A stretch of 30,340 nt of DNA, taken from the sequence record BK067783.1, one strand, 5' to 3'. Shown here one piece after another: positions 3,697 to 30,340 of this stretch. The notes under the pieces are model-generated. The model had not been told where the DNA came from, made no database searches, and saw only the letters and a program-made list of their open reading frames with translations. Numbering within the stretch: position 1 is the stretch's first letter; each line of letters starts with the position of its first letter. The translations under genes and the position numbers were made by a program.

Positions 3697-4133
3697 CGGG
3701 AGAAAGTCACCATTAATTGTGCGGATTTACCTAACTCTAAAACCTTATTCATTGTCCAACATCCAGCAGTTTTCTCATGGTTTCTTTCTTCTGGATCTTC
3801 GTGATGATAACACTTTGTTTTATGAACAGGTACGGATATACAATGTAATTCGTCACAATCATTTGCTATCTGTAGGTTTCTTTTCTTATAAGATTGCCAT
3901 GTTTCATAATCAGGTTTGTAAACGAGAGTCTCAAATCCTAATGACTTGGCAACATCTAAAGCGATGGTATCAACGCCTTTAGCACCACCAGAAATTATTA
4001 TCTCATTTCCAGTGTAACGACTGTTCAAAATTAAGCCTATGAACTGTCTAACATCCCTTTCTTCATTATCTGTCATATTGACACTTGTACCAACAAAAGC
4101 AATCTTCCTATTACTTGATGACGGCTGTGTCAT
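3693..4133 (-). CDS. SLOG superfamily (YspA/DUF2493-like) protein
   Basis: IAFVGTS; IISGGAKGVD; YKPD; RNLQIANDCD. Confidence 0.8.
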   Translation of the reverse strand: MTQPSSSNRKIAFVGTSVNMTDNEERDVRQFIGLILNSRYTGNEIIISGGAKGVDTIALDVAKSLGFETLVYKPDYETWQSYKKRNLQIANDCDELHCISVPVHKTKCYHHEDPEERNHEKTAGCWTMNKVLELGKSAQLMVTFSR

Positions 4134-4435
4134 TGGAGTAAGATACCTCGTTCATAAATAGCATCGTTTAAGTTTAATTTCCTTGAATGGAATACTTGTG
4201 GTTTACCTCTACCATCTGTTAGATTTAATTGAAGTCTAAAGTAACTTCCATCCTCGATTACATTTACATCTTCTAATTCATATTGACCATCAAAATCGCC
4301 CATTATCCAAATTGCTTCATCTAAAGGTGAAGGTTCATTATGAAGATGGTTTCTTGATCCATCAGGCATAGCAATACAAACTTCATAGCCTTTCTGATTC
4401 TTTTGTAAGTAGAGATTACTTGAATCTAGTTTCAT
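4130..4435 (-). CDS. Hypothetical protein
   Basis: ORF track; overlap-coupled. Confidence 0.7.
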   Translation of the reverse strand: MKLDSSNLYLQKNQKGYEVCIAMPDGSRNHLHNEPSPLDEAIWIMGDFDGQYELEDVNVIEDGSYFRLQLNLTDGRGKPQVFHSRKLNLNDAIYERGILLQ

Positions 4436-4797
4436 TACTTGCTCTCCATCTGGTTATCGAAGTCTTTGATATGTAATCGAAACATAGCGAAAGCACATAT
4501 TACAAGAATAGAAGGTAAGACGGTCATAACAAATTGTATTTGTTGAGGCATTACGTCATTTAATTGATGATTATATTTTAAACAAAGTTGTTTAAACTCA
4601 TCTAAAGATTTAGCTTCATCATGTATTGGAGATTTCTGCCAATCTTCAATAGTAATACTATTACATGATAAGTCTGTATTTGGATTCATAAATTTAATAA
4701 TAGACGGGCTTACTTCATACATTCCAAAAGCAGTTCCTATGCAAACTAGAATACCGACTACAATAGCTTTAAAGTTTAATTTATGAACTAAACTCAA
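4435..4797 (-). CDS. Two-TM membrane protein with Cys-bounded loop
   Basis: Hydrophobic segments flank a C-x26-C loop. Confidence 0.7.
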   Translation of the reverse strand: MSLVHKLNFKAIVVGILVCIGTAFGMYEVSPSIIKFMNPNTDLSCNSITIEDWQKSPIHDEAKSLDEFKQLCLKYNHQLNDVMPQQIQFVMTVLPSILVICAFAMFRLHIKDFDNQMESK

Positions 4798-4816
4798 TTA
4801 CTTGCACCTCGGGATG

Positions 4817-5305
4817 TCATTGGGTCTCAATCTTCCTTAACTCAAGCTTGGGTTTCTCTTTACTACCCACAACTTCAAAATCATTTAGCATTGGTGTATT
4901 ACCTGATTCAATCTGTTTGACAAGCTGATCTCCTAATGTAACTGACTCGCCACTTGGAAGCTTCATAACTATGTGAGCCATGAATATCTCTTCAATGGAA
5001 TACATCTCTGCTTCTTTTGCAGACAGTAAAGCTTTGAGATAATGGTAAAAATATCTGTAAGACCTAGCTTCGTCATATTCTTTTGAATACCTTGAACCTT
5101 TCTCTATGAATGGTATTTTGATTTTAATCATCAATGATACATCATTGTCTTTTCTTATTATAAATTCAAAATAGGATTTGTCACCACCTTGTTGAGTTAG
5201 TCGTTTCTCTTGTATGCCAAATTTAGCAAGAAGCTTGTTTACATCTATCATGGTCTTAACCGAATCAACTACAGTTCCTTTGTAAAGAGATGTCTTTGGT
5301 ATCAA
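4817..5305 (-). CDS. Conserved phage-type hypothetical protein
   Basis: Resembles a widespread phage family pattern (T..EI..LL..FG ... LKA.L.A.E ... EE.F.AHI.LP.G.T.G). Function unknown; recognised by eye only. Confidence 0.7.
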   Translation of the reverse strand: MIPKTSLYKGTVVDSVKTMIDVNKLLAKFGIQEKRLTQQGGDKSYFEFIIRKDNDVSLMIKIKIPFIEKGSRYSKEYDEARSYRYFYHYLKALLSAKEAEMYSIEEIFMAHIVMKLPSGESVTLGDQLVKQIESGNTPMLNDFEVVGSKEKPKLELRKIETQ

Positions 5306-7980: not shown

Positions 7981-9945
7981 ATGCCTGATGATTTTAGTAA
8001 GCCTCCACCTAATAGAACCGCAGAGCAAAACGCAGCTAAACAAGGTGCGCAATTATCAGCACAACAACAAGCACAAAGGCAACAACAGATAAAGTCACAA
8101 GATGTAACTAAAACAAGAGAGCAAGCACCCGGTGCTATTCAATCAGGATCAGAACAAGAAACTTTTGTTAGACAAGAAGCAGCTAAAGCAGAACAACAAA
8201 AAATGGTAGAAGGTGGATATGGAAAAGGTGCTACCAAAGATCAATATGCAGGAGCTAGGGAAGCAGCTCTTAAAGCTGGTTCGTTTAGTTATTCAACGCA
8301 GACACCAGCAAGCTTACCAAGTACAATAAACAAGGAAGGAAAAACAACAGTTAGAAACCAAGACCTTTACAAAGGCGCACCAATACAAATTCAAAAACCA
8401 AAAGAAGAAACCGTAACCATATCAACGCCAAAAGGATCAAGAACAGTAACAGGTGAACAAGCTCTCATATCAAGATTGAAAACAAATTATGCAAGTGCAA
8501 CACCACCGCAACAAAAACAATCATCATCAACACAAAAGACACAAGGCACACCACAATCAAATCAAATCAATTCCATTCTAAGACAGAATTTATCCAACAA
8601 AGAAGGACAAGCAGCTAGTGATATTTCAGGCAAGACAGAACCAGAAGCAGTTCCATTTTTATCTTTAAAATCTCCAATTAAAGTATCTGTTGTTCCTGTA
8701 AAAGCTGGTGAAACATTCAAGACAAGAGGAAGAGGTGCTTCTGGTGCAAAAACAGGTCAAAAGGTACAAATTATTATTCCAGAACAACAAGGAACAAAAG
8801 AAATTCCTGCTACATCAATAATAGATGTTTTACAATTTGCACCAATAGGAGGAATAGGTTTAGGTGGAGCTAGAGCAGCTTTGAGAGGAACAGGATCAAT
8901 AGTTGGTACAATAAAATCTACACCAGAAGTTTTCAAAACTGGTCAAGGATTGGAAAGAGTTTCAAGTCAAGCTATCACAGTACCAAAAGGAGTAAAGCCA
9001 CCAGAAGAAACCCTATTAGGTAAAGTTCAAGCTGCCTTTTCTAAACCACAACCTAAAGCAGAAACAAAACCACCTCAACAATTTACTAGTACCGAGATAT
9101 CATTAGGAAGAGGAACAGGTAAAGAACCAGAAGGTAAAGGTGGCGTATTATCTGGAAAGGGAACAGGTGGAGGAACTAAACCAAGTGGAGGAACACCAAA
9201 AGAAACCACGTCAAGATCAGGTCAAGTATTACAACAGATAGAAAAGGAAAAAGAACCAAAGACTACAACCAAGACTACAACCAAAACAGAACAAATCAAT
9301 AAAGCTATAACAAGAGAAAAAGAACCTACAACCACAAAAGCTAGATCCAAAGTAAAACCAGAAACAACAGAAGAACAAATCCCTATATTACTAACAAGAC
9401 CACCTAGCACTAGAACAACACCAAAAGAAACAAGACGTAATCCACTTGTTCCAGTTATACCAATATCAGTTCCAGCACCACCACAACCAAAGACAAAACC
9501 AAAGGAAGAGGAAAGATTAGGAATTGTAGATCTATTACAAACACAAAAAAATATACAAACACCAAAGCAAGGAACAGAACAAACAACAATCTTTGATACA
9601 TTACAAACTCAAGTAACAAGACAAACACCAAAGCAGACACAAGAACCAATAACATTTTCTGATCTAGTTTATACAGAAAAAGGAGGTGGAGAAACACCAA
9701 AGGCAGGCGCAGAGTTTGGAGGGCTTGGTGGAAATCCTGGATTGATAGGTAAAGTATCTAGTGGAGGATCAAAGAAAAATTATCTAGGCAATGTTCCAAT
9801 AGATGATATCATAGGAATAGGAAAACAGGAAGAATTAACTTACAAAGAATCAACAATCAAAACAAGATCACAGGCAGAAGAAAGGAGAGCTTCATCAGGT
9901 AGTTTTGTAGGATCTCCACAAAAAGGGAAGGTTAAATTCTTTTGA
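7981..9945 (+). CDS. Large low-complexity Q/T/K/P/G-rich protein, likely disordered
   Basis: 654 aa, no Cys or Trp, strongly biased composition. Confidence 0.8.
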   Translation: MPDDFSKPPPNRTAEQNAAKQGAQLSAQQQAQRQQQIKSQDVTKTREQAPGAIQSGSEQETFVRQEAAKAEQQKMVEGGYGKGATKDQYAGAREAALKAGSFSYSTQTPASLPSTINKEGKTTVRNQDLYKGAPIQIQKPKEETVTISTPKGSRTVTGEQALISRLKTNYASATPPQQKQSSSTQKTQGTPQSNQINSILRQNLSNKEGQAASDISGKTEPEAVPFLSLKSPIKVSVVPVKAGETFKTRGRGASGAKTGQKVQIIIPEQQGTKEIPATSIIDVLQFAPIGGIGLGGARAALRGTGSIVGTIKSTPEVFKTGQGLERVSSQAITVPKGVKPPEETLLGKVQAAFSKPQPKAETKPPQQFTSTEISLGRGTGKEPEGKGGVLSGKGTGGGTKPSGGTPKETTSRSGQVLQQIEKEKEPKTTTKTTTKTEQINKAITREKEPTTTKARSKVKPETTEEQIPILLTRPPSTRTTPKETRRNPLVPVIPISVPAPPQPKTKPKEEERLGIVDLLQTQKNIQTPKQGTEQTTIFDTLQTQVTRQTPKQTQEPITFSDLVYTEKGGGETPKAGAEFGGLGGNPGLIGKVSSGGSKKNYLGNVPIDDIIGIGKQEELTYKESTIKTRSQAEERRASSGSFVGSPQKGKVKFF

Positions 9946-12541: not shown

Positions 12542-12738
12542 AAATTACAAAACATAGCTCAACATTCGTAATAACTGCTTTGACATATGCTAAAATGAAA
12601 CGCAATAGTGCTACATTCCCTAACTGTTATTATTGTATTATAAAACTAGAAATTGGTGATTTAATACATAGCAAGCCAGGAGAAAGTAAACGTCATTATT
12701 ACCATAAAAAATGTGCGGAAATGGTTCATCTGATATGA
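12538..12738 (+). CDS. LIM/PARP-like small zinc-finger protein
   Basis: CYYC...YHKKC. Confidence 0.65.
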   Translation: MKITKHSSTFVITALTYAKMKRNSATFPNCYYCIIKLEIGDLIHSKPGESKRHYYHKKCAEMVHLI

Positions 12739-13454
12739 ATAAACAAGTTCTCAAATGTGGTCATACAGAAAAGGATCATGAAAAAATAAAGTGTAGAGGT
12801 ATAAGAACAAAGCTAGATAGAATAAACGAAGAGAAACCATTAACAGTAAAAAACAGATGGAATCAATTAACCATATCTTTACCAAGAATAGATGATAAGA
12901 AAAGATGGGCAGGCTACGCAGGGATAACAGGCATTTCTAAAAAGATAGCTGCCATAATTCCAAAATCAAAAATATATGTTGAACCGTTTGCAGGCACGGT
13001 CAAAGTAATGCAAGAATTAAGAAAGATAGATAAGAGCTTTGCATTTGCTATATTAAATGATACGTCGGATTTTGTTTGTAATTGGTTATCAACTAACTTT
13101 GATGATGCTAGAATATCAGTCACCAATGAAGACTTTGCAGACTGTATTAAAAATAATGATTCTAAAGACACCTTCTTTCTAATAGATCAACCTTGGAATC
13201 GTTCTCTTTATGATCAAATGTACAGCTCTTTTAATAGAGTATCAGTGGCAGCTTATGATAATGAAGTAATAGAGATATGCCAAAAGATAAAAGGCAAGTT
13301 CATTATAACAACCAGAAAAGAAAACGAGAGGATGTTTAAATCAGGTTTCAATAATTATTTAATAAAAAGTGATTATGTTTTATCTGGTCATTATCCTAAA
13401 GTATTACTAACGACAAATATGAAACTGAGGGGATTAGATATTGCCAAGAGGTAA
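12735..13454 (+). CDS. D12-class N6-adenine DNA methyltransferase-like protein (start revised to 12735)
   Basis: YAGITGISKKI, YVEPFAG (motif I), ILND, FFLIDQPW (motif IV variant of DPPY). Confidence 0.75.
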   Translation: MNKQVLKCGHTEKDHEKIKCRGIRTKLDRINEEKPLTVKNRWNQLTISLPRIDDKKRWAGYAGITGISKKIAAIIPKSKIYVEPFAGTVKVMQELRKIDKSFAFAILNDTSDFVCNWLSTNFDDARISVTNEDFADCIKNNDSKDTFFLIDQPWNRSLYDQMYSSFNRVSVAAYDNEVIEICQKIKGKFIITTRKENERMFKSGFNNYLIKSDYVLSGHYPKVLLTTNMKLRGLDIAKR

Positions 13455-13602: not shown

Positions 13603-13742
13603 GTGGTGCAAGATTAACATATTATGATCCTGATCTGAAATACACTACTAATTGTTTTCAAGGCAGACATAAAAAATGTCATGGGAATTTTGGAAGGTGT
13701 GAATGTGAATGCCATAAGAGGTATAATAATGATAATCAATAA
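13599..13742 (+). CDS. CxCxCH-family micro-protein, 47 aa (not in track)
   Basis: NCFQGRHKKCHGNFGRCECECH. Confidence 0.65.
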   Translation: MSGARLTYYDPDLKYTTNCFQGRHKKCHGNFGRCECECHKRYNNDNQ

Positions 13743-14208
13743 CAAGAAAAAACATTATGCAGACAAGCTAGTTACTCCATCATATCTGTTTAATCTATCT
13801 CAAAAGAAATACAATATTAAATGTAATATTGATGTAGCTGCCGATGCAAAAAATACAAAATGTAAAAGATTTATTGATAGAAAAAAGGACTATCTTAAGC
13901 AATTTGATTTTAAACGAACTGATATTCTATGGGGAAATTTCCCACATTCAAAGCAAAAAGAATTTGTAATACATACAGTCAAAGTATGCAAGAAAAACAA
14001 ATGCAGAGCATTATTATTATTACCTATTAATGTTCTAACTTCAGCTTATGCTATAAAATATTTATTACCTGTTATCAAATTTACAAAGAAGATGATAATT
14101 CCTGGAAGGCATAAATTTCTATCTCCAAGATCACTAAAAATATCTAAACAACCTTCTGTAAATGGATATGTATCTTGTTACATTCCAAATAGGAGATCAA
14201 AACAATGA
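13729..14208 (+). CDS. Phage Dam-family N6-adenine methyltransferase-like protein (start revised to 13729)
   Basis: TP..LF; IDVAADAKNTKC; WGNFPHS (NPPY variant); LLLP. Confidence 0.75.
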   Translation: MIINNKKKHYADKLVTPSYLFNLSQKKYNIKCNIDVAADAKNTKCKRFIDRKKDYLKQFDFKRTDILWGNFPHSKQKEFVIHTVKVCKKNKCRALLLLPINVLTSAYAIKYLLPVIKFTKKMIIPGRHKFLSPRSLKISKQPSVNGYVSCYIPNRRSKQ

Positions 14209-14436: not shown

Positions 14437-14582
14437 ACAGATTTGTAAACGAAGCAAGAAAGAAAACAGAAAGAAATTTTGATGCGCCAAAGCTAGATTA
14501 TATACAAATTAATTCTGGTATTAAATGGTATAAGACATTAAATTCCTATGACGGTTTAGAAGCCTGGTTGGAGTGGTATTAA
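14433..14582 (+). CDS. Micro-protein, 49 aa (not in track)
   Basis: TTGA overlap at start and TAATG overlap with the HNH gene. Confidence 0.55.
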   Translation: MNRFVNEARKKTERNFDAPKLDYIQINSGIKWYKTLNSYDGLEAWLEWY

Positions 14583-15085
14583 TGACATCACACCTTAATG
14601 GAGATGAAATAAAAAGAATTAGAACAGAGCTTAGAGAAAAGCATGGCGAAGTATGTACTAGATGTAGTAAGACTCCAAGAGATCTAAATGTACCTAATCT
14701 AGAATGTCATGAAGTAAAATATGAAAGACCTTTGAGAATAGAAAACTTTGCTTTTCTATGTCATGGATGTAATAGACTAAAAGAACTAAGAAAAAATGAA
14801 ATAATGAATAGAGAGCTATCTGCTTCACACAAGAAAAATATTGAATCAAAACCATTATTTGAAAGATGGTTAAGAACCACTTTACAAGAAAATAATCATC
14901 ATTATCTAATGAGTGAAGTAATAGCTAGCGGATCATATGTATCTGATTGTAACGTAATGACGGTTAAAAGATGGTTAGAATCTCTCACTTCACGAGCTGC
15001 ACCTTATTGCATAGCACCTAATGAGTATGGTCGTATGCATGTATGGGAAAGAGAATTTGTACCATCAAAAGAAGATCTAATTTAA
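14582..15085 (+). CDS. HNH endonuclease domain fused to a C-terminal winged-helix-like domain
   Basis: CTRC...ECHE...IEN...LCHGCN. C-terminal helical region (MTVKRWLESLTS) is wHTH-like by inference. Confidence 0.7.
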   Translation: MTSHLNGDEIKRIRTELREKHGEVCTRCSKTPRDLNVPNLECHEVKYERPLRIENFAFLCHGCNRLKELRKNEIMNRELSASHKKNIESKPLFERWLRTTLQENNHHYLMSEVIASGSYVSDCNVMTVKRWLESLTSRAAPYCIAPNEYGRMHVWEREFVPSKEDLI

Positions 15086-15248
15086 AAAGTCGAGTAGAAT
15101 CTACTCGATTGTGTGTGTACACCTACACCTTTTGTTCCATTCCTAGACAAGAAACTAAATATTTCCACTAGGTAGAGTAGAATTTAAAAAATCGAGTAGA
15201 TTACATTCGATTGTGTGTGTATGTGTGTGTTTAAAAAAAGCACACACA
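15079..15248. repeat. Two 41-bp direct repeats with dyad, TG tracts and hairpin (candidate origin or tandem promoters)
   Basis: 15079-15119 vs 15181-15221 are 36/41 identical; perfect dyad TCGAGTAGA-A-TCTACTCGA at 15090-15108; hairpin 15222-15230/15240-15248. Confidence 0.85.
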
Positions 15249-15350
15249 GACAAAAGAGTACGGTAACAATTACAGTACAATATAAAGATACACAAATGTT
15301 TCCAGTCTAGGCATGAAAACTTTAAAGCATATCAGATACAAAATTATATC

Positions 15351-15491
15351 ATGGATAATTGTTACATATGTAATGACCAGGCACATCTAAAATGTAATGT
15401 ATGTAATAGTAAAGTATGCAAAGAACATTACTTGTTTCATGGAACAAAGTGTATCGTTTATACGACTACAAAATTTGAACGCACCAGGTAA
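15351..15491 (+). CDS. Zinc-finger micro-protein, 46 aa (not in track)
   Basis: CYIC...CNVC...CKEH; TATA at 15321, 30 nt upstream. Confidence 0.7.
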   Translation: MDNCYICNDQAHLKCNVCNSKVCKEHYLFHGTKCIVYTTTKFERTR

Positions 15492-16638: not shown

Positions 16639-16878
16639 ATGAGATACCGTTCCCAAAGTCAGATCATTCAATCAATCCTAGAAACAGCTCTTACACCAGT
16701 TTCTAAAACTAGAATCATGTACAAGGCTTATCTATCATATACACAGGTAACAAATTATCTTACTCTATTGGTAAAATCTGGTCTGTTAAAAGAAAACAAG
16801 ACTAATCATTTTGAAGCAACAGACAAGGCAAAAGAATTTATCAAATACGCCAAAGCAATCCAAGAATTAACAGAATAA
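16639..16878 (+). CDS. Winged helix-turn-helix regulator (HTH_45-like, abundant in Nitrososphaerota)
   Basis: MRYRS..II..ILE...KTRIMYKAYLSYTQ...YL..L...GLL...T.K..EF; own TATA at 16608. Confidence 0.85.
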   Translation: MRYRSQSQIIQSILETALTPVSKTRIMYKAYLSYTQVTNYLTLLVKSGLLKENKTNHFEATDKAKEFIKYAKAIQELTE

Positions 16879-19372: not shown

Positions 19373-19474
19373 ATGGTATTTAGTTACGAATGTTCTACAA
19401 GTGAGCATGAATTTTGTAGGATGCCAAATTGTATTTGTTCATGTCATAAGAGGTTTAGAGGTCAATGCCAATAG
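19373..19474 (+). CDS. CxCxCH-family micro-protein, 33 aa (not in track)
   Basis: ECSTSEHEFCRMPNCICSCH; overlaps the ATPase start. Confidence 0.65.
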   Translation: MVFSYECSTSEHEFCRMPNCICSCHKRFRGQCQ

Positions 19475-20643
19475 AGCAAAAAGTTATTACAATAGGTGGT
19501 CAGAAGGAAGAGTTCTTCAAACCCATTACTACCAAATGGAAGGGCATAGAGATGATACGCAATCAAACACCAAAGACAGCTATACATTCTATAGCTCAAT
19601 ATGCAAAAAGATTAGACTATGTTAAGATAGGTATAGTAGGAGATCCGCACACAGGAAAAACAACACTAGCTAAATTTCTTGCTCATTTCTTACATTTGAT
19701 GTGCTTGGATCTTTTAGGTATCACATATGTAGTAAAGATATTTACAAGAGATGAATTACTTAGTTTTAAGAAAACAATAGAAGCACTACCAGCAGCTAAC
19801 TATATCTTCATATTTGATGATGTATCATGGATTGAGAAGGAAGGAACACCACAACAGATTAACGAATTGAAAGCTGGTGAATCAATGATACGTCACTTCA
19901 AAGATAAGAAGGATGTTAAAATCATACAGATAGATAACTACCATTACACAAAGGCGGAAAACAAATATTTGAGACAATCTCATTTTAAGATATTTACTGC
20001 TATTGGATCAGAAGAGGAAGATAACATTAATTCAATTACAAAAAACTCTAATCCATTTATTATATCACAATTCGCAAAACTACAAACAGAGATGTATTCA
20101 CAAGGAACATTTACTTTTCTAATTGGAAAGAACAGACGAAACTTTACTATGAGATACAGAGATCCATTTATCCCTGTTTTATTTTGGGATGGAAGATCAT
20201 TAAGATTTATTGTAACACCTGAACGTGAATGGATGGATAGAGGGTGCGCGATCTGTTCTATGGCAGAAGGAGCTAAAGACGAGAATTTTAGCTTGGACAA
20301 GTTCAAACAAGATCTGGATGCAAGATATGGTGAAATCATAGCAAAGAACGCAATTAAGATAAAAATGAAGGAACTTGGATTAAACACCTATAGACCAGAA
20401 CTTACAAGAGCTGTAAACAAGATATCTAAAACCATGACAGAACAAAATTTTGATTTATTAGCATTAGGTCAAATTTACGGATTAAAGCTTACTCCACCAC
20501 CTAAAAGAATCAAGCTAGATAAATTAATAGAGCAAGAGAAAGATAAAAATAAAAACCTAGATTCATTTTCAGATAAAAACATAGTACAAGTTATTCCTTG
20601 GGAAGATGAGGAAAGAGAAAAACCAGAGGTAATACAACAATGA
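19465..20643 (+). CDS. P-loop ATPase (spindle-virus AAA-type, putative assembly/packaging)
   Basis: Walker A GDPHTGKT; Walker B IFIFDD; downstream strand ending HY. Confidence 0.85.
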   Translation: MPIEQKVITIGGQKEEFFKPITTKWKGIEMIRNQTPKTAIHSIAQYAKRLDYVKIGIVGDPHTGKTTLAKFLAHFLHLMCLDLLGITYVVKIFTRDELLSFKKTIEALPAANYIFIFDDVSWIEKEGTPQQINELKAGESMIRHFKDKKDVKIIQIDNYHYTKAENKYLRQSHFKIFTAIGSEEEDNINSITKNSNPFIISQFAKLQTEMYSQGTFTFLIGKNRRNFTMRYRDPFIPVLFWDGRSLRFIVTPEREWMDRGCAICSMAEGAKDENFSLDKFKQDLDARYGEIIAKNAIKIKMKELGLNTYRPELTRAVNKISKTMTEQNFDLLALGQIYGLKLTPPPKRIKLDKLIEQEKDKNKNLDSFSDKNIVQVIPWEDEEREKPEVIQQ

Positions 20644-28365: not shown

Positions 28366-28776
28366 ATGGAAATTTCTATTCTTGAATATATTGTGTACGC
28401 TTTAATTGGATATTCTTCTTTCGCTGTTCTAATTGTTTCAGCTGTTAAAGAAATTCCAGATAGTAGAGTCTTATCTTTAGTTAGAGTAATTTATTTATTT
28501 CCCGGTATCATAGCATTAATGATTCTTGCAAGCTCTGGAATAAACATAGATGTAAATACAGTAACAACAAACAACTTAATCAAATCCATAAACACTACAC
28601 AAACATGGACAGAAGCTACGACACAATCAAATACTATCATACTTCAAAATCCAGTATGGTCAATGTTCCATTGGTTGTTAGCTATTACTCTAATATTCTA
28701 TATGATAAAACAAATCTTGAACCTGTTAACAAAAGCACCAGCTCAGGGCGTAAGGGAAGATAATGAAGTCGAATGA
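28366..28776 (+). CDS. Three-TM putative structural protein
   Basis: Three hydrophobic segments. Confidence 0.75.
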   Translation: MEISILEYIVYALIGYSSFAVLIVSAVKEIPDSRVLSLVRVIYLFPGIIALMILASSGINIDVNTVTTNNLIKSINTTQTWTEATTQSNTIILQNPVWSMFHWLLAITLIFYMIKQILNLLTKAPAQGVREDNEVE

Positions 28777-30340
28777 TAAGAAGAACTTACCTTCTAATCC
28801 TAATAGTTTTTATATCATCTATCTACATTTCATCAGCTAACGCACAATTCGCAATTCAACCACCAACCGTTAACATACCACCAACAAATGCGTACAATCA
28901 ATTTAATGTAAGCAATGCTACCATTTCAGCAAAGAACTTTATTGCTTCTGTTAATATAGTAGGAAAGAATGGTTTAGGTGTAACAGGTTCTAACAGTTCT
29001 CAAACAATATATCTAACAGCTCCTAATCCATCATCAGGATTACCAACTACTTATTGTCCTGCTAACTTTGGATTTGTTTCTTATAACGCAACGACAAATA
29101 TTCTAGCTTGTGCATTGTTAAATCAAACTGGATCTGGTTCTGGTGTAACATCATTAAATAGTTTGACAGGTGCTTTAACAATAGCCAAAGGAACAAACAT
29201 CAATTCCATAACCGCAGCTGGTAATACTATAACCATAAACGCAGCTGGTTGGCAAAACAATACGGGTTCTAATTTAGGTACAAGTGGTTCTGGTGTCTTT
29301 GCTTCAATGAGTGGATCAATATTGCAATTCTTAAAACTAATATCATCAAATTCCTTTCTAAGTATAACAACAAACTCCACCAATGTTATATTTAATATTC
29401 CAAGTATTGTAACAAAATTAATTGCTGGTACTGGAATATCGGTAAATCAAACATCAGGAAATATTTTAGTAACTAATACGGGTGTGACAAAATTAGCTGC
29501 AACATCACCAGTTGTAGTTAACGCATCAACTGGTCAAGTAAATGTTTCTTGCCCTACTTGTTCAACTACAACAGGAACTATAACAGGAAGTGCAAACGCT
29601 GGTAAAGCTACTGGTTCAGTTGGTGTATTATCAACACCTACAACTACGTTAATCAAAGGCAGAAACATGACAGGTACTAGTCCTATTGTAGTTACAAAAA
29701 CAAATGATACAGATATAGCTATATCATGTCCAACATGTTCTAGTACAACTGGAACAATCACTGGTGGATCTAATATCGGTACTTCTGGTTTTGGTTTCTT
29801 CAAGAACAGTACAAATAATAATATTAATCTAAGAAACTTAACTACTTCAAGATCTGATCTATTTACAATAACTCAATCTTCTAATAATGTTAATCTAGCT
29901 TCTAGTTTCAAATCTAATACTATTGCATGTACGAATCAATTCATTTCTGCATTTACAAATTCAACTGGAATTTATACATGTGCAACACCCACTAATACAG
30001 CTCAAGTAGTAAGCGCAGACAATGGAGTAAGTTTAATTAGTTCACAATTTAATGCAACAGAAACAAAATTAAAATCATTACGTAATTCAACAGCTTATGT
30101 ATTATGGAATCATAATACAACATCAATTACACCTAGCTTCCAGTTTAAAATTAATACAAAGGCTTGTACAAACAATCAATTTATATCAGCAATATCAAAC
30201 AGTTCAGATTCTACATGTAATAAAATGTTACTTAATGCAGTAAGTAAAACTAATTCTTATACTGTTGCATCTACAGATGATATTATATTAGTAAATGCAA
30301 CAGGAGGTAACTATACTATTACTATTCCTACTATAGCAAC
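28773..30340 (+). CDS. N-terminal part of the ~1012-aa adhesin (not in track; continues at 1..1471)
   Basis: Translated by hand with no stop. ATGA overlap; signal peptide ending SANA; about 20 N-x-S/T sequons; internal repeats. Confidence 0.85.
   Translation, partial: MIRRTYLLILIVFISSIYISSANAQFAIQPPTVNIPPTNAYNQFNVSNATISAKNFIASVNIVGKNGLGVTGSNSSQTIYLTAPNPSSGLPTTYCPANFGFVSYNATTNILACALLNQTGSGSGVTSLNSLTGALTIAKGTNINSITAAGNTITINAAGWQNNTGSNLGTSGSGVFASMSGSILQFLKLISSNSFLSITTNSTNVIFNIPSIVTKLIAGTGISVNQTSGNILVTNTGVTKLAATSPVVVNASTGQVNVSCPTCSTTTGTITGSANAGKATGSVGVLSTPTTTLIKGRNMTGTSPIVVTKTNDTDIAISCPTCSSTTGTITGGSNIGTSGFGFFKNSTNNNINLRNLTTSRSDLFTITQSSNNVNLASSFKSNTIACTNQFISAFTNSTGIYTCATPTNTAQVVSADNGVSLISSQFNATETKLKSLRNSTAYVLWNHNTTSITPSFQFKINTKACTNNQFISAISNSSDSTCNKMLLNAVSKTNSYTVASTDDIILVNATGGNYTITIPTIA

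Follow-up and report, generated by a model that had tools for sequence, protein, structure and literature searches.

We analysed the record BK067783.1, a 30,340-bp stretch of DNA (here called the window) from the Nitrosopumilaceae spindle-shaped virus isolate NTT2, of rhizosphere origin, and found that one of its genes, ORF37, which encodes a predicted HNH nuclease carrying a winged helix-turn-helix (HNH-wHTH), is directly followed by a non-coding element whose layout recurs after diverged relatives of the gene. Comparison of the related sequences indicates that this gene-site linkage is conserved across six diverged lineages, because these six have the layout, while family members devoid of the HNH gene, three loci with the gene (L004, L126, and L156), and 19 control genes are without it. 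The cassette is new and has not been described previously; it is not a demonstrated replication module. We tentatively favor the reading that the element is the cognate DNA site of ORF37, the two together forming a nickase-plus-nick-site cassette.

The linkage was examined in downstream DNA from 12 members of the HNH family, taken from GenBank, IMG/VR, ENA, JGI, and Logan contigs. One locus (L154) was too short, which left 11 informative loci, and the related contigs were mostly 1 to 2 kb, placing an element elsewhere in those genomes beyond reach. Two TG-type tracts, 60 to 129 nt apart, were present in seven loci that represent six diverged lineages of the HNH family. In six loci, an NTCGAN box begins 2 to 7 nt after the stop codon's first base, and at this position NTT2, L005, NTM1, and L155 carry AGTCGAGT; the protein identity quoted for this set is 27 to 40%, that of L005 to ORF37 being 83%. 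The proximal short TG tract is found at +10 to +62 in the relatives, and a second NTCGAN box follows 60 to 129 nt on, no more than 6 nt from a long alternating tract. The exception is L153, in which a TCGA-type box is near neither tract.

The distal tract shows strict pyrimidine-purine alternation over 14 to 20 nt (19 in NTT2, 20 in NTM1, 20 in L124, 19 in L155, 16 in L125, and 14 in L153). Since TA, CG, and CA are the only departures from (TG)n, it is the alternation that is kept rather than the exact sequence. After the TG tract, the relatives usually have a CRCAC-type tract (GCACACACA, CCACACGA, and ACGCACGA) and a GTACG box; furthermore, AGAGTACGGTA(A/C)CAATT is common to NTT2 and L155, whose proteins are ~27% identical, and CAGTACGG is present in L152. 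Weaker cases were also encountered, namely, a reduced version in L152 and a single TGTGTGTGTA tract at +171 in L127.

In six of nine lineages, an alternating run of at least 14 nt was located no more than 260 nt from the stop codon, while ~3 such runs were counted outside the element in 119 kb from four family genomes; by our own estimate, the probability of this arising by chance is ~1e-11, and the association of tract and gene is thus far beyond chance. No such tract was present after the 19 HNH-only control genes, which came from low-GC marine viral contigs, and the element was absent from eight HNH-less family members (two complete genomes and six partial loci). Within the NTT2 and NTM1 genomes the element is unique. 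Genes upstream and downstream are not conserved between loci, and a conserved upstream partner gene was sought and not found, so it is the HNH gene itself with which the element is associated. An earlier reading of the window from sequence alone (the original prediction) had proposed the HNH-wHTH gene and an adjoining origin-like repeat array as an unconventional replication module, and had named conservation of the gene-repeat linkage in relatives as a check. The linkage is indeed kept, in the form of the bipartite layout of the six diverged lineages, and this supports a functional tie of the HNH-winged-helix protein to the element.

The features of the NTT2 locus are as follows.
14582..15085, + strand: ORF37, predicted 167-aa HNH/HNN zinc-finger nuclease, with HNH at ~22-67, a long helix at 81-103, and a C-terminal winged helix at 107-156.
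15079..15119, + strand: repeat R1, with an A-rich head (TTTAAAAA), a AGTCGAGT box, and a short alternating TG tract; holds the ORF37 stop codon.
15090..15108, no strand: perfect 19-bp dyad TCGAGTAGA-A-TCTACTCGA, inside R1 and specific to NTT2.
15110..15127, + strand: proximal alternating tract TGTGTGTGTACAC, with the mini-hairpin GTGTA-CACC-TACAC, then CTTTTGTT.
15135..15155, no strand: left arm of a long-range inverted repeat (TTCCATTCCTAGACAAGAAAC); its minus strand carries GTTTC-N3-TCTAGG.
15181..15221, + strand: repeat R2, with an A-rich head, a ATCGAGTAGA box, a degenerate dyad, and TTCGAT immediately before the long tract.
15212..15230, + strand: distal tract TGTGTGTGTATGTGTGTGT, 19 nt of alternating pyrimidine-purine, conserved more widely than any other feature.
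15218..15252, no strand: TG/CA hairpin, with 15-nt arms (15218-15232 and 15238-15252) that are 87% complementary and a 5-nt A loop.
15256..15278, + strand: GAGTACGG box in a GTAC...GTAC hairpin, with sequence matches in L155 and L152.
15298..15318, no strand: right arm of the long-range inverted repeat (GTTTCCAGTCTAGGCATGAAA), which pairs with 15135-15155 in the folds of both strands.
15320..15327, + strand: ordinary TATA-like box (CTTTAAAG), ~31 nt upstream of the next gene's ATG; the element ends here.
15351..15491, + strand: unannotated ORF for a 46-aa B-box-like zinc-finger protein, the next gene after the element.

The start of ORF37 and the stop of ORF36 share one base, and ORF37 is therefore the last gene of its + strand operon; its stop codon TAA (15083-15085) falls inside R1. 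R1 and R2 are 41 nt each, match at 36 of 41 positions (88%), and are spaced 102 nt start to start, forming the sole non-coding direct-repeat array of the 30-kb genome. In 200 shuffles of the region, the best pair of 41-nt windows never exceeded 28 of 41 matches against the 36 observed, so the repeat pair is far beyond chance. By itself the perfect dyad is statistically ordinary, as hairpins with perfect 9-bp arms number three in the window versus 2.0 expected from shuffles. The TTTAAAAA heads stand at 15081 and 15183, with GTGTGTGTA at +30 of both repeats (15111 and 15213), and TCGAGTA and + strand (TG)n runs of at least 4 are found in the element and nowhere else in the NTT2 genome. The R2 dyad, AATCGAGT/ATTCGATT, pairs on the + strand via G.T.

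These data bear out the description from which the original prediction started, that is, the two repeats and their spacing, the stop codon within R1, the perfect and the degenerate dyad, the heads, the +30 position, and the TG/CA hairpin. The features that it stressed, the perfect dyad and the TTTAAAAA heads, are not, however, those that the relatives keep: in the 83%-identical L005, the 3′ arm of the dyad is lost and the second head reads CTTAAAG, and in L125 the dyad is absent. Both L005 and L125 have TG/CAC hairpins equivalent to the proximal mini-hairpin of NTT2, followed by CTTT. We also observed that GTTTC-N3-TCTAGG occurs twice in NTT2, inverted around R2 (15142-15155 on the minus strand and 15298-15311 on the plus strand), and once in NTM1 (L002, ~6838), and that a shorter version, TTTCCACT(C)TAG, recurs in NTT2, L005, and L125. 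The motif could be a second type of binding site in the element.

ORF37 itself was evaluated by profile searches and structure prediction. Its match to the Pfam HNH profile (PF01844) scored 13.8 bits, below the gathering threshold of 21.4, which some relatives passed (P0019 with 27.2 bits and P0036 with 27.9 bits), and its match to PHROG HNH, in which the hits are phage HNH endonucleases, had an E value of 1.7e-4. The motif CxxC...H43...N55...CxxC-N64 is intact in NTT2, L005, L004, and NTM1; over 23 family members, the zinc-finger cysteines C25, C60, and C63 are invariant, and C28 is kept in at least 90%. A profile search of 1.84 billion representative proteins returned 106 clusters at E<=1e-3, most of them 160 to 220 aa long and of the same two-part layout as ORF37.

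An AlphaFold model of ORF37, built with the 23-sequence family alignment, reached a predicted local distance difference test (pLDDT) of 88 and comprises a beta-beta-alpha head, a long helix, and a winged helix. The head is formed by strands 41-44 and 56-59 and helix 61-64 (pLDDT ~84-93), and the winged helix by strand 107-109, helices 110-121 and 125-135, and strands 142-146 and 152-156, with a pLDDT of 94-97 over residues 100-160. Foldseek placed T4 endonuclease VII, Cas5-HNH, and Cap5 near the head, at weak E values of 0.26 to 0.9, and for the wing the PDB list was led by the winged helices of cullin WHB, MarR, Fur, ScpB, and MecI, all at E>=0.047. The model and the motifs together are consistent with the predicted HNH-wHTH architecture, and the label stands on that basis.

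Two more specific identities of the protein were dropped. A Z-alpha domain in the wing lacked specific support: ORF37 had no Pfam z-alpha match, the PKZ Z-alpha domain (4kmf) ranked only 33rd in Foldseek (E=0.76), level with other winged helices, and the residues that we take to be the Z-alpha contacts (Asn/Tyr/Trp) failed to line up with ORF37. Membership in a defence system was likewise set aside, as a weak similarity to the PtuB HNH (E=1e-4) was all that pointed to it.

As the element recurs after diverged relatives of the gene, it is probably the enzyme's own target. Rep-ori, relaxase-oriT, and Int-attP are examples of enzyme/cis-site pairs, in which gene and site typically lie close together. 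The data show how the domains are arranged, that the catalytic motif is intact, and that linkage and layout are conserved; binding, nicking, and downstream use we infer as follows. ORF37 and the 200 bp past its stop codon would make up a single gene-plus-site cassette, in which ORF37 would act as a small site-directed nuclease, most likely a nickase, with the winged helix supplying sequence recognition. Its target would be bipartite, consisting of a TCGAGTA-type box with a short alternating TG tract and then a second box abutting a 14- to 20-nt alternating tract; negative supercoiling can make such a tract unwind, flip, or extrude a hairpin. The winged helix would dock on the boxes, the HNH head would cut one strand in or beside the tract, and the resulting 3′-OH would start DNA synthesis or recombination, so that the cassette would work like Rep/ori or relaxase/oriT but with an HNH enzyme.

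A more daring form of this proposal, which we consider a long shot, is that the winged helix senses a supercoil-driven DNA structure (Z-form or an extruded TG/CA hairpin) beside the TCGA box and that the HNH domain nicks there; it is suggested by the fact that the relatives conserve strict pyrimidine-purine alternation and not the exact sequence. Were it true, thaumarchaeal mobile elements would have an HNH initiator of replication or recombination that does without a HUH-type Rep. A variant on the same footing would be a minimal HNH enzyme that has its own 3′ untranslated RNA as a partner.

Several results weigh against the nickase-plus-nick-site proposal. The catalytic His/Asn are not invariant in the wider family, the His being replaced by Tyr or Arg in P0006, P0017, and P0021. 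All Foldseek matches of ORF37 are weak, with best E values of 0.047 (PDB) and 1.4e-3 (BFVD) and none below 1e-3. In L004 (68% identity), L126, and L156, which is GC-rich, the gene is not followed by the element, which means that a cis site downstream is either dispensable or located elsewhere on their partial contigs. Finally, in a leave-out experiment, an nhmmer profile of four elements did not pick up the loci held out (E=5.2 for L153, no match for L155), against a background that was biased by including our own pattern-selected decoys. The "conservation" thus consists of short motifs, position, and composition and is not alignable homology.

Searches for further copies gave little. The IMG/VR pattern GTCGAGTA..TGTGTGTG was unspecific, with at least 116 chance matches, and the stricter ATTCG..TGTGTGTATGTGTGT found NTT2 and NTM1 only, besides chance matches; one pattern match, L130, was rejected as an unrelated GC-rich low-complexity sequence. 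A protein scan of metagenome contigs yielded the window's own contig only, a DNA pattern scan of 185k genomes, one per prokaryotic species, gave seven bacterial chance matches and zero archaea, and a "distant" blastn search against phage records returned the window alone, with the low-complexity filter hiding the tract. The scan of species genomes thus yielded no attB-like host copy of this distal tract, and an attP reading is therefore without support.

Among the other explanations, the one that survives best, although we regard it as doubtful, holds that R1 and R2 are terminator, promoter, or operator units and that ORF37 or another viral factor binds the dyads to control TG-tract transcripts or the downstream operon. 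A version of it had been put forward in the original prediction, with the repeats as tandem operator-controlled promoters for small RNAs, and the geometry is indeed right for archaea, since TTTAAAAA plus 22 nt plus a T/G start gives the archaeal TATA-to-start spacing with the dyads in between. The heads also retain a general A/T-rich likeness to a TATA box. Against a weight matrix derived from 14 promoter-like sites of NTT2 (consensus ~AACCTTAAATAG, also given as (A)ACCTTAAATAG, ~32 nt before start codons), they nevertheless stayed under 5.5 bits, the training sites themselves scoring 4.6 to 11.9, and neither the heads nor the perfect dyad is kept in L005. Read on the minus strand, both repeats resemble a terminator, with a hairpin followed by T5/T6, but the strand of the T-runs changes from minus in NTT2 to + in NTM1 and L155, no minus-strand gene is located nearby to be terminated, and the element is unique in the genome and therefore not a generic terminator. 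The HNH gene is invariably the last in its operon, the weight matrix finds a standard viral promoter after the element in L155, L152, L153, and L127, and a regulator gene beside its own operator is a common arrangement; the downstream genes, however, vary among loci.

The region may instead be the 3′ untranslated region of the HNH mRNA or a small RNA, acting as a partner or guide of the nuclease (OMEGA/HEARO-like) or as a stability or processing signal, which we judge improbable. The element starts at the stop codon and is therefore co-transcribed with the HNH gene, and the NTT2 region folds far better than its shuffles (z of -4.8 and -5.0 on the two strands), with the long-range stem 15135-15155/15298-15318 enclosing R2, the TG/CA hairpin, and the GTAC hairpin. 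The TG tract pairs with the downstream CRCAC tract with U-A to U.G changes, and the R2 stem is kept through G.U on the + strand of NTT2 and L005. In the relatives, however, the z values (per locus, from mononucleotide shuffles) were -0.1 to -2.2, similar to those of element-less control loci, and the RNAalifold consensus was -1.97 kcal/mol with one compensatory pair. HEARO as the IscB omega RNA offers a precedent (PMC11610941), and the IscB HNH region is the best NCBIfam match of ORF37, but at 18.2 bits versus a cut-off of 175. Moreover, no Rfam match, HEARO included, was obtained at E up to 1 in the window and eight related loci, no variable guide-like segment was seen, and neither a RuvC nor a PLMP domain accompanies the predicted DNA-binding winged helix of the protein.

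That ORF37 is a free-standing HNH homing enzyme, with the conserved flank as the remaining half of its homing site, appeared to us just as improbable as the RNA explanation. HNH is a classic homing-endonuclease fold, and phage HNH endonucleases make up the PHROG matches; the gene is patchy within the virus family (2 of 10 genomes) and occurs in differing replicon backgrounds, and a conserved motif sits exactly at the gene boundary. Against this, an "empty" site, that is, an element without the gene, was not found in any genome or scan. In addition, the HNH start codon overlaps the preceding gene in NTT2, NTM1, L004, and L127, so that the HNH gene is embedded in an operon. With the ORF29 and ORF44/integrase homologues as reference points, its location is comparable across NTT2, NTM1, and L004, suggesting vertical descent within the soil clade.

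A cos-like genome-end or packaging site, with the HNH protein as a processing accessory, is very improbable. In cos-type phages, an HNH gene next to the packaging genes is a conserved feature that virion production requires (PMC12967558), a 67-nt TG/TA tract ends the L124 contig, and the dyad-plus-repeats layout resembles cos regions; yet no terminase or portal match was found in any large ORF scanned, the neighbors are small ORFs, a spindle shape is predicted for the virus family (PMC10866085), and joining the record ends gives a circle with an ORF spanning the junction. A CRISPR mini-array was rejected, there being two copies only, of 88% identity, in a layout that varies among relatives and always begins at the HNH stop codon.

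The proposal that the module is a replication origin fared less well than the tie between protein and element. While the conserved linkage upheld that tie, the claim of an origin with its initiator is without direct support. Against the HNH protein as initiator stand the presence of its gene only in NTT2 and NTM1, 2 of the 10 distinct family genomes, and L004, where the gene occurs but the element does not; since the virus family has the cassette only as an accessory, this is not the universal origin of the family. The statement that no other initiator is recognizable in the genome was only partly fair. No Orc1/Cdc6 profile matched in the window, in which the repeats are direct and not inverted around an AT-rich core, and no HUH motif or catalytic tyrosine and no Rep or relaxase profile was matched in Pfam, PHROG, or NCBIfam by ORF37 or any large ORF scanned. 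However, ORF48 (19465..20643), an AAA+-type ATPase with generic AAA profile matches that is present in all 11 family records, is a proposed core gene tied to replication (PMC10866085). The cumulative GC skew, which had been suggested as a check, has its minimum at ~10.5 kb and a local maximum at ~16.5 kb, at coding-strand switches, and does not turn at 15.1 kb; as skew in a 30-kb virus tracks gene direction, this is weak evidence.

In L124 and L153, the element borders ~1 kb of repeat-rich, iteron-like non-coding DNA (L124, 1380-2040; L153, 1700-2540). The L124 stretch holds TTTGGAATAAA repeats in both orientations, and that of L153 holds four ATGTTATAAACAT palindromes plus AATAAAGCTTTA and extends as far as an ORF homologous to the core ATPase ORF48 (25% identity, E=2e-19). 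These stretches are better origin candidates than the TG element, and their position at its border lends the origin claim indirect support. Also in favor of an origin, no other repeated non-coding feature is present in the NTT2 genome. Thus "origin" is one possible use of the cassette and not a finding.

The NTT2 family was proposed as Nipumfusiviridae from metagenome-derived genomes by Ni et al. (2024, PMC10866085), who did not discuss the HNH gene, an origin, or promoters; a spindle shape is predicted for it, and it is without a protein-primed polymerase, unlike other known thaumarchaeal spindle viruses. Record BK067791.1 holds the identical 30,340-bp sequence, reversed and permuted, so the family comprises 10 distinct genomes and not 11. 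ORF67 and ORF1 (28773-30340 and 2-1471) are a single frame of ~1011 aa over the record ends, with zinc-ribbon-type matches only, and it follows that the record is either a linearised circle or a permuted genome; the annotation divides this gene into two. To our knowledge, no replication mode has been described for any virus of ammonia-oxidising archaea.

Additional observations concern the surrounding genes. Upstream in the operon of the HNH gene lie two genes for adenine N6-methyltransferases (D12 class, Dam-like; ORF32 and ORF34, at 12711-13454 and 13729-14208); no homologue of either was found in NTM1, and a restriction-modification pairing with them was dropped for this reason. The 46-aa zinc-finger ORF lies outside the conserved module, because downstream genes vary among loci. 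It has homologues in NTM1 (L123, 3913-3788) and L004 (7077-7214), both beside the ORF44 homologue, which indicates that NTT2 is rearranged here. ORF43 (16639-16878) matches the Sso10a chromatin-protein family of winged-helix DNA binders (NCBIfam, 7.9e-20), and its product equally could bind the NTT2 element. ORF25 (7981-9945, 654 aa) is strongly A-rich, with an AT skew of up to 0.46 and 66- to 69-nt coding repeats at 9238-9713, and a family match was sought for it and not found.

Among the related contigs, L124 starts with a 67-nt TG/TA alternating tract (1-67) upstream of a small-ORF operon that ends in the HNH gene, so that TG tracts flank the entire operon in this case. In L004, an ORF at 4069-5004 is homologous to the transcription factor TFIIB/TFB (PF00382, 1.4e-19), and its stop overlaps the HNH start; the match points to a putative virus-encoded archaeal basal transcription factor on a virus-like contig.

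The cassette can be compared with several known systems. Free-standing phage HNH homing endonucleases share the fold, a similar size, and a patchy distribution with ORF37, which differs in its operon setting with overlapping start and stop, its conserved downstream element, and the failure to find empty sites. The IscB/IshB OMEGA systems with their HEARO/omega RNA likewise combine an HNH protein with a conserved adjacent non-coding element; the NTT2 element, however, is 3′ and not 5′ of the gene, with no PLMP/RuvC, HEARO match, or covariation support. The cos-type phage HNH proteins (HK97 gp74; Skunavirus HrdP, PMC12967558) are small and encoded right beside a non-coding processing site, but HrdP-type proteins depend on terminase and cut non-specifically, whereas NTT2 is a predicted spindle virus without a terminase match and ORF37 has its own winged helix. 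The HNH-type endonuclease/MarR-family regulator of the Halobacterium phage ChaoS9 (BFVD A0A481VAV0, 145 aa), the third-best BFVD structural match to ORF37 (E=6e-3), also joins an HNH domain to a winged helix in an archaeal virus, although the match is weak (template modelling score of ~0.3), the host lineage is unrelated, the protein is not known to have a linked DNA element, and the comparison is of the protein only.

The closest parallel is offered by Rep/ori and relaxase/oriT. ORF37 departs from these in being HNH/HNN and not HUH, in that no catalytic tyrosine able to form a covalent intermediate was identified, in that its nicking is predicted, and in that the cassette is accessory in its family. 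Even if ORF37 does not nick, the element remains a family-specific regulatory or RNA motif worth annotating, and one 167-aa protein with one 200-bp DNA makes a small in vitro system. In Rep/ori and relaxase/oriT, as here, the enzyme gene adjoins a short cis site of inverted repeats and binding boxes, the pair moves between replicons, and a DNA-binding domain is fused to a metal-dependent nuclease. If ORF37 nicks its site, the cassette would be an HNH counterpart of these systems and would provide a handle on cis-acting sites in the mobile elements of soil archaea.

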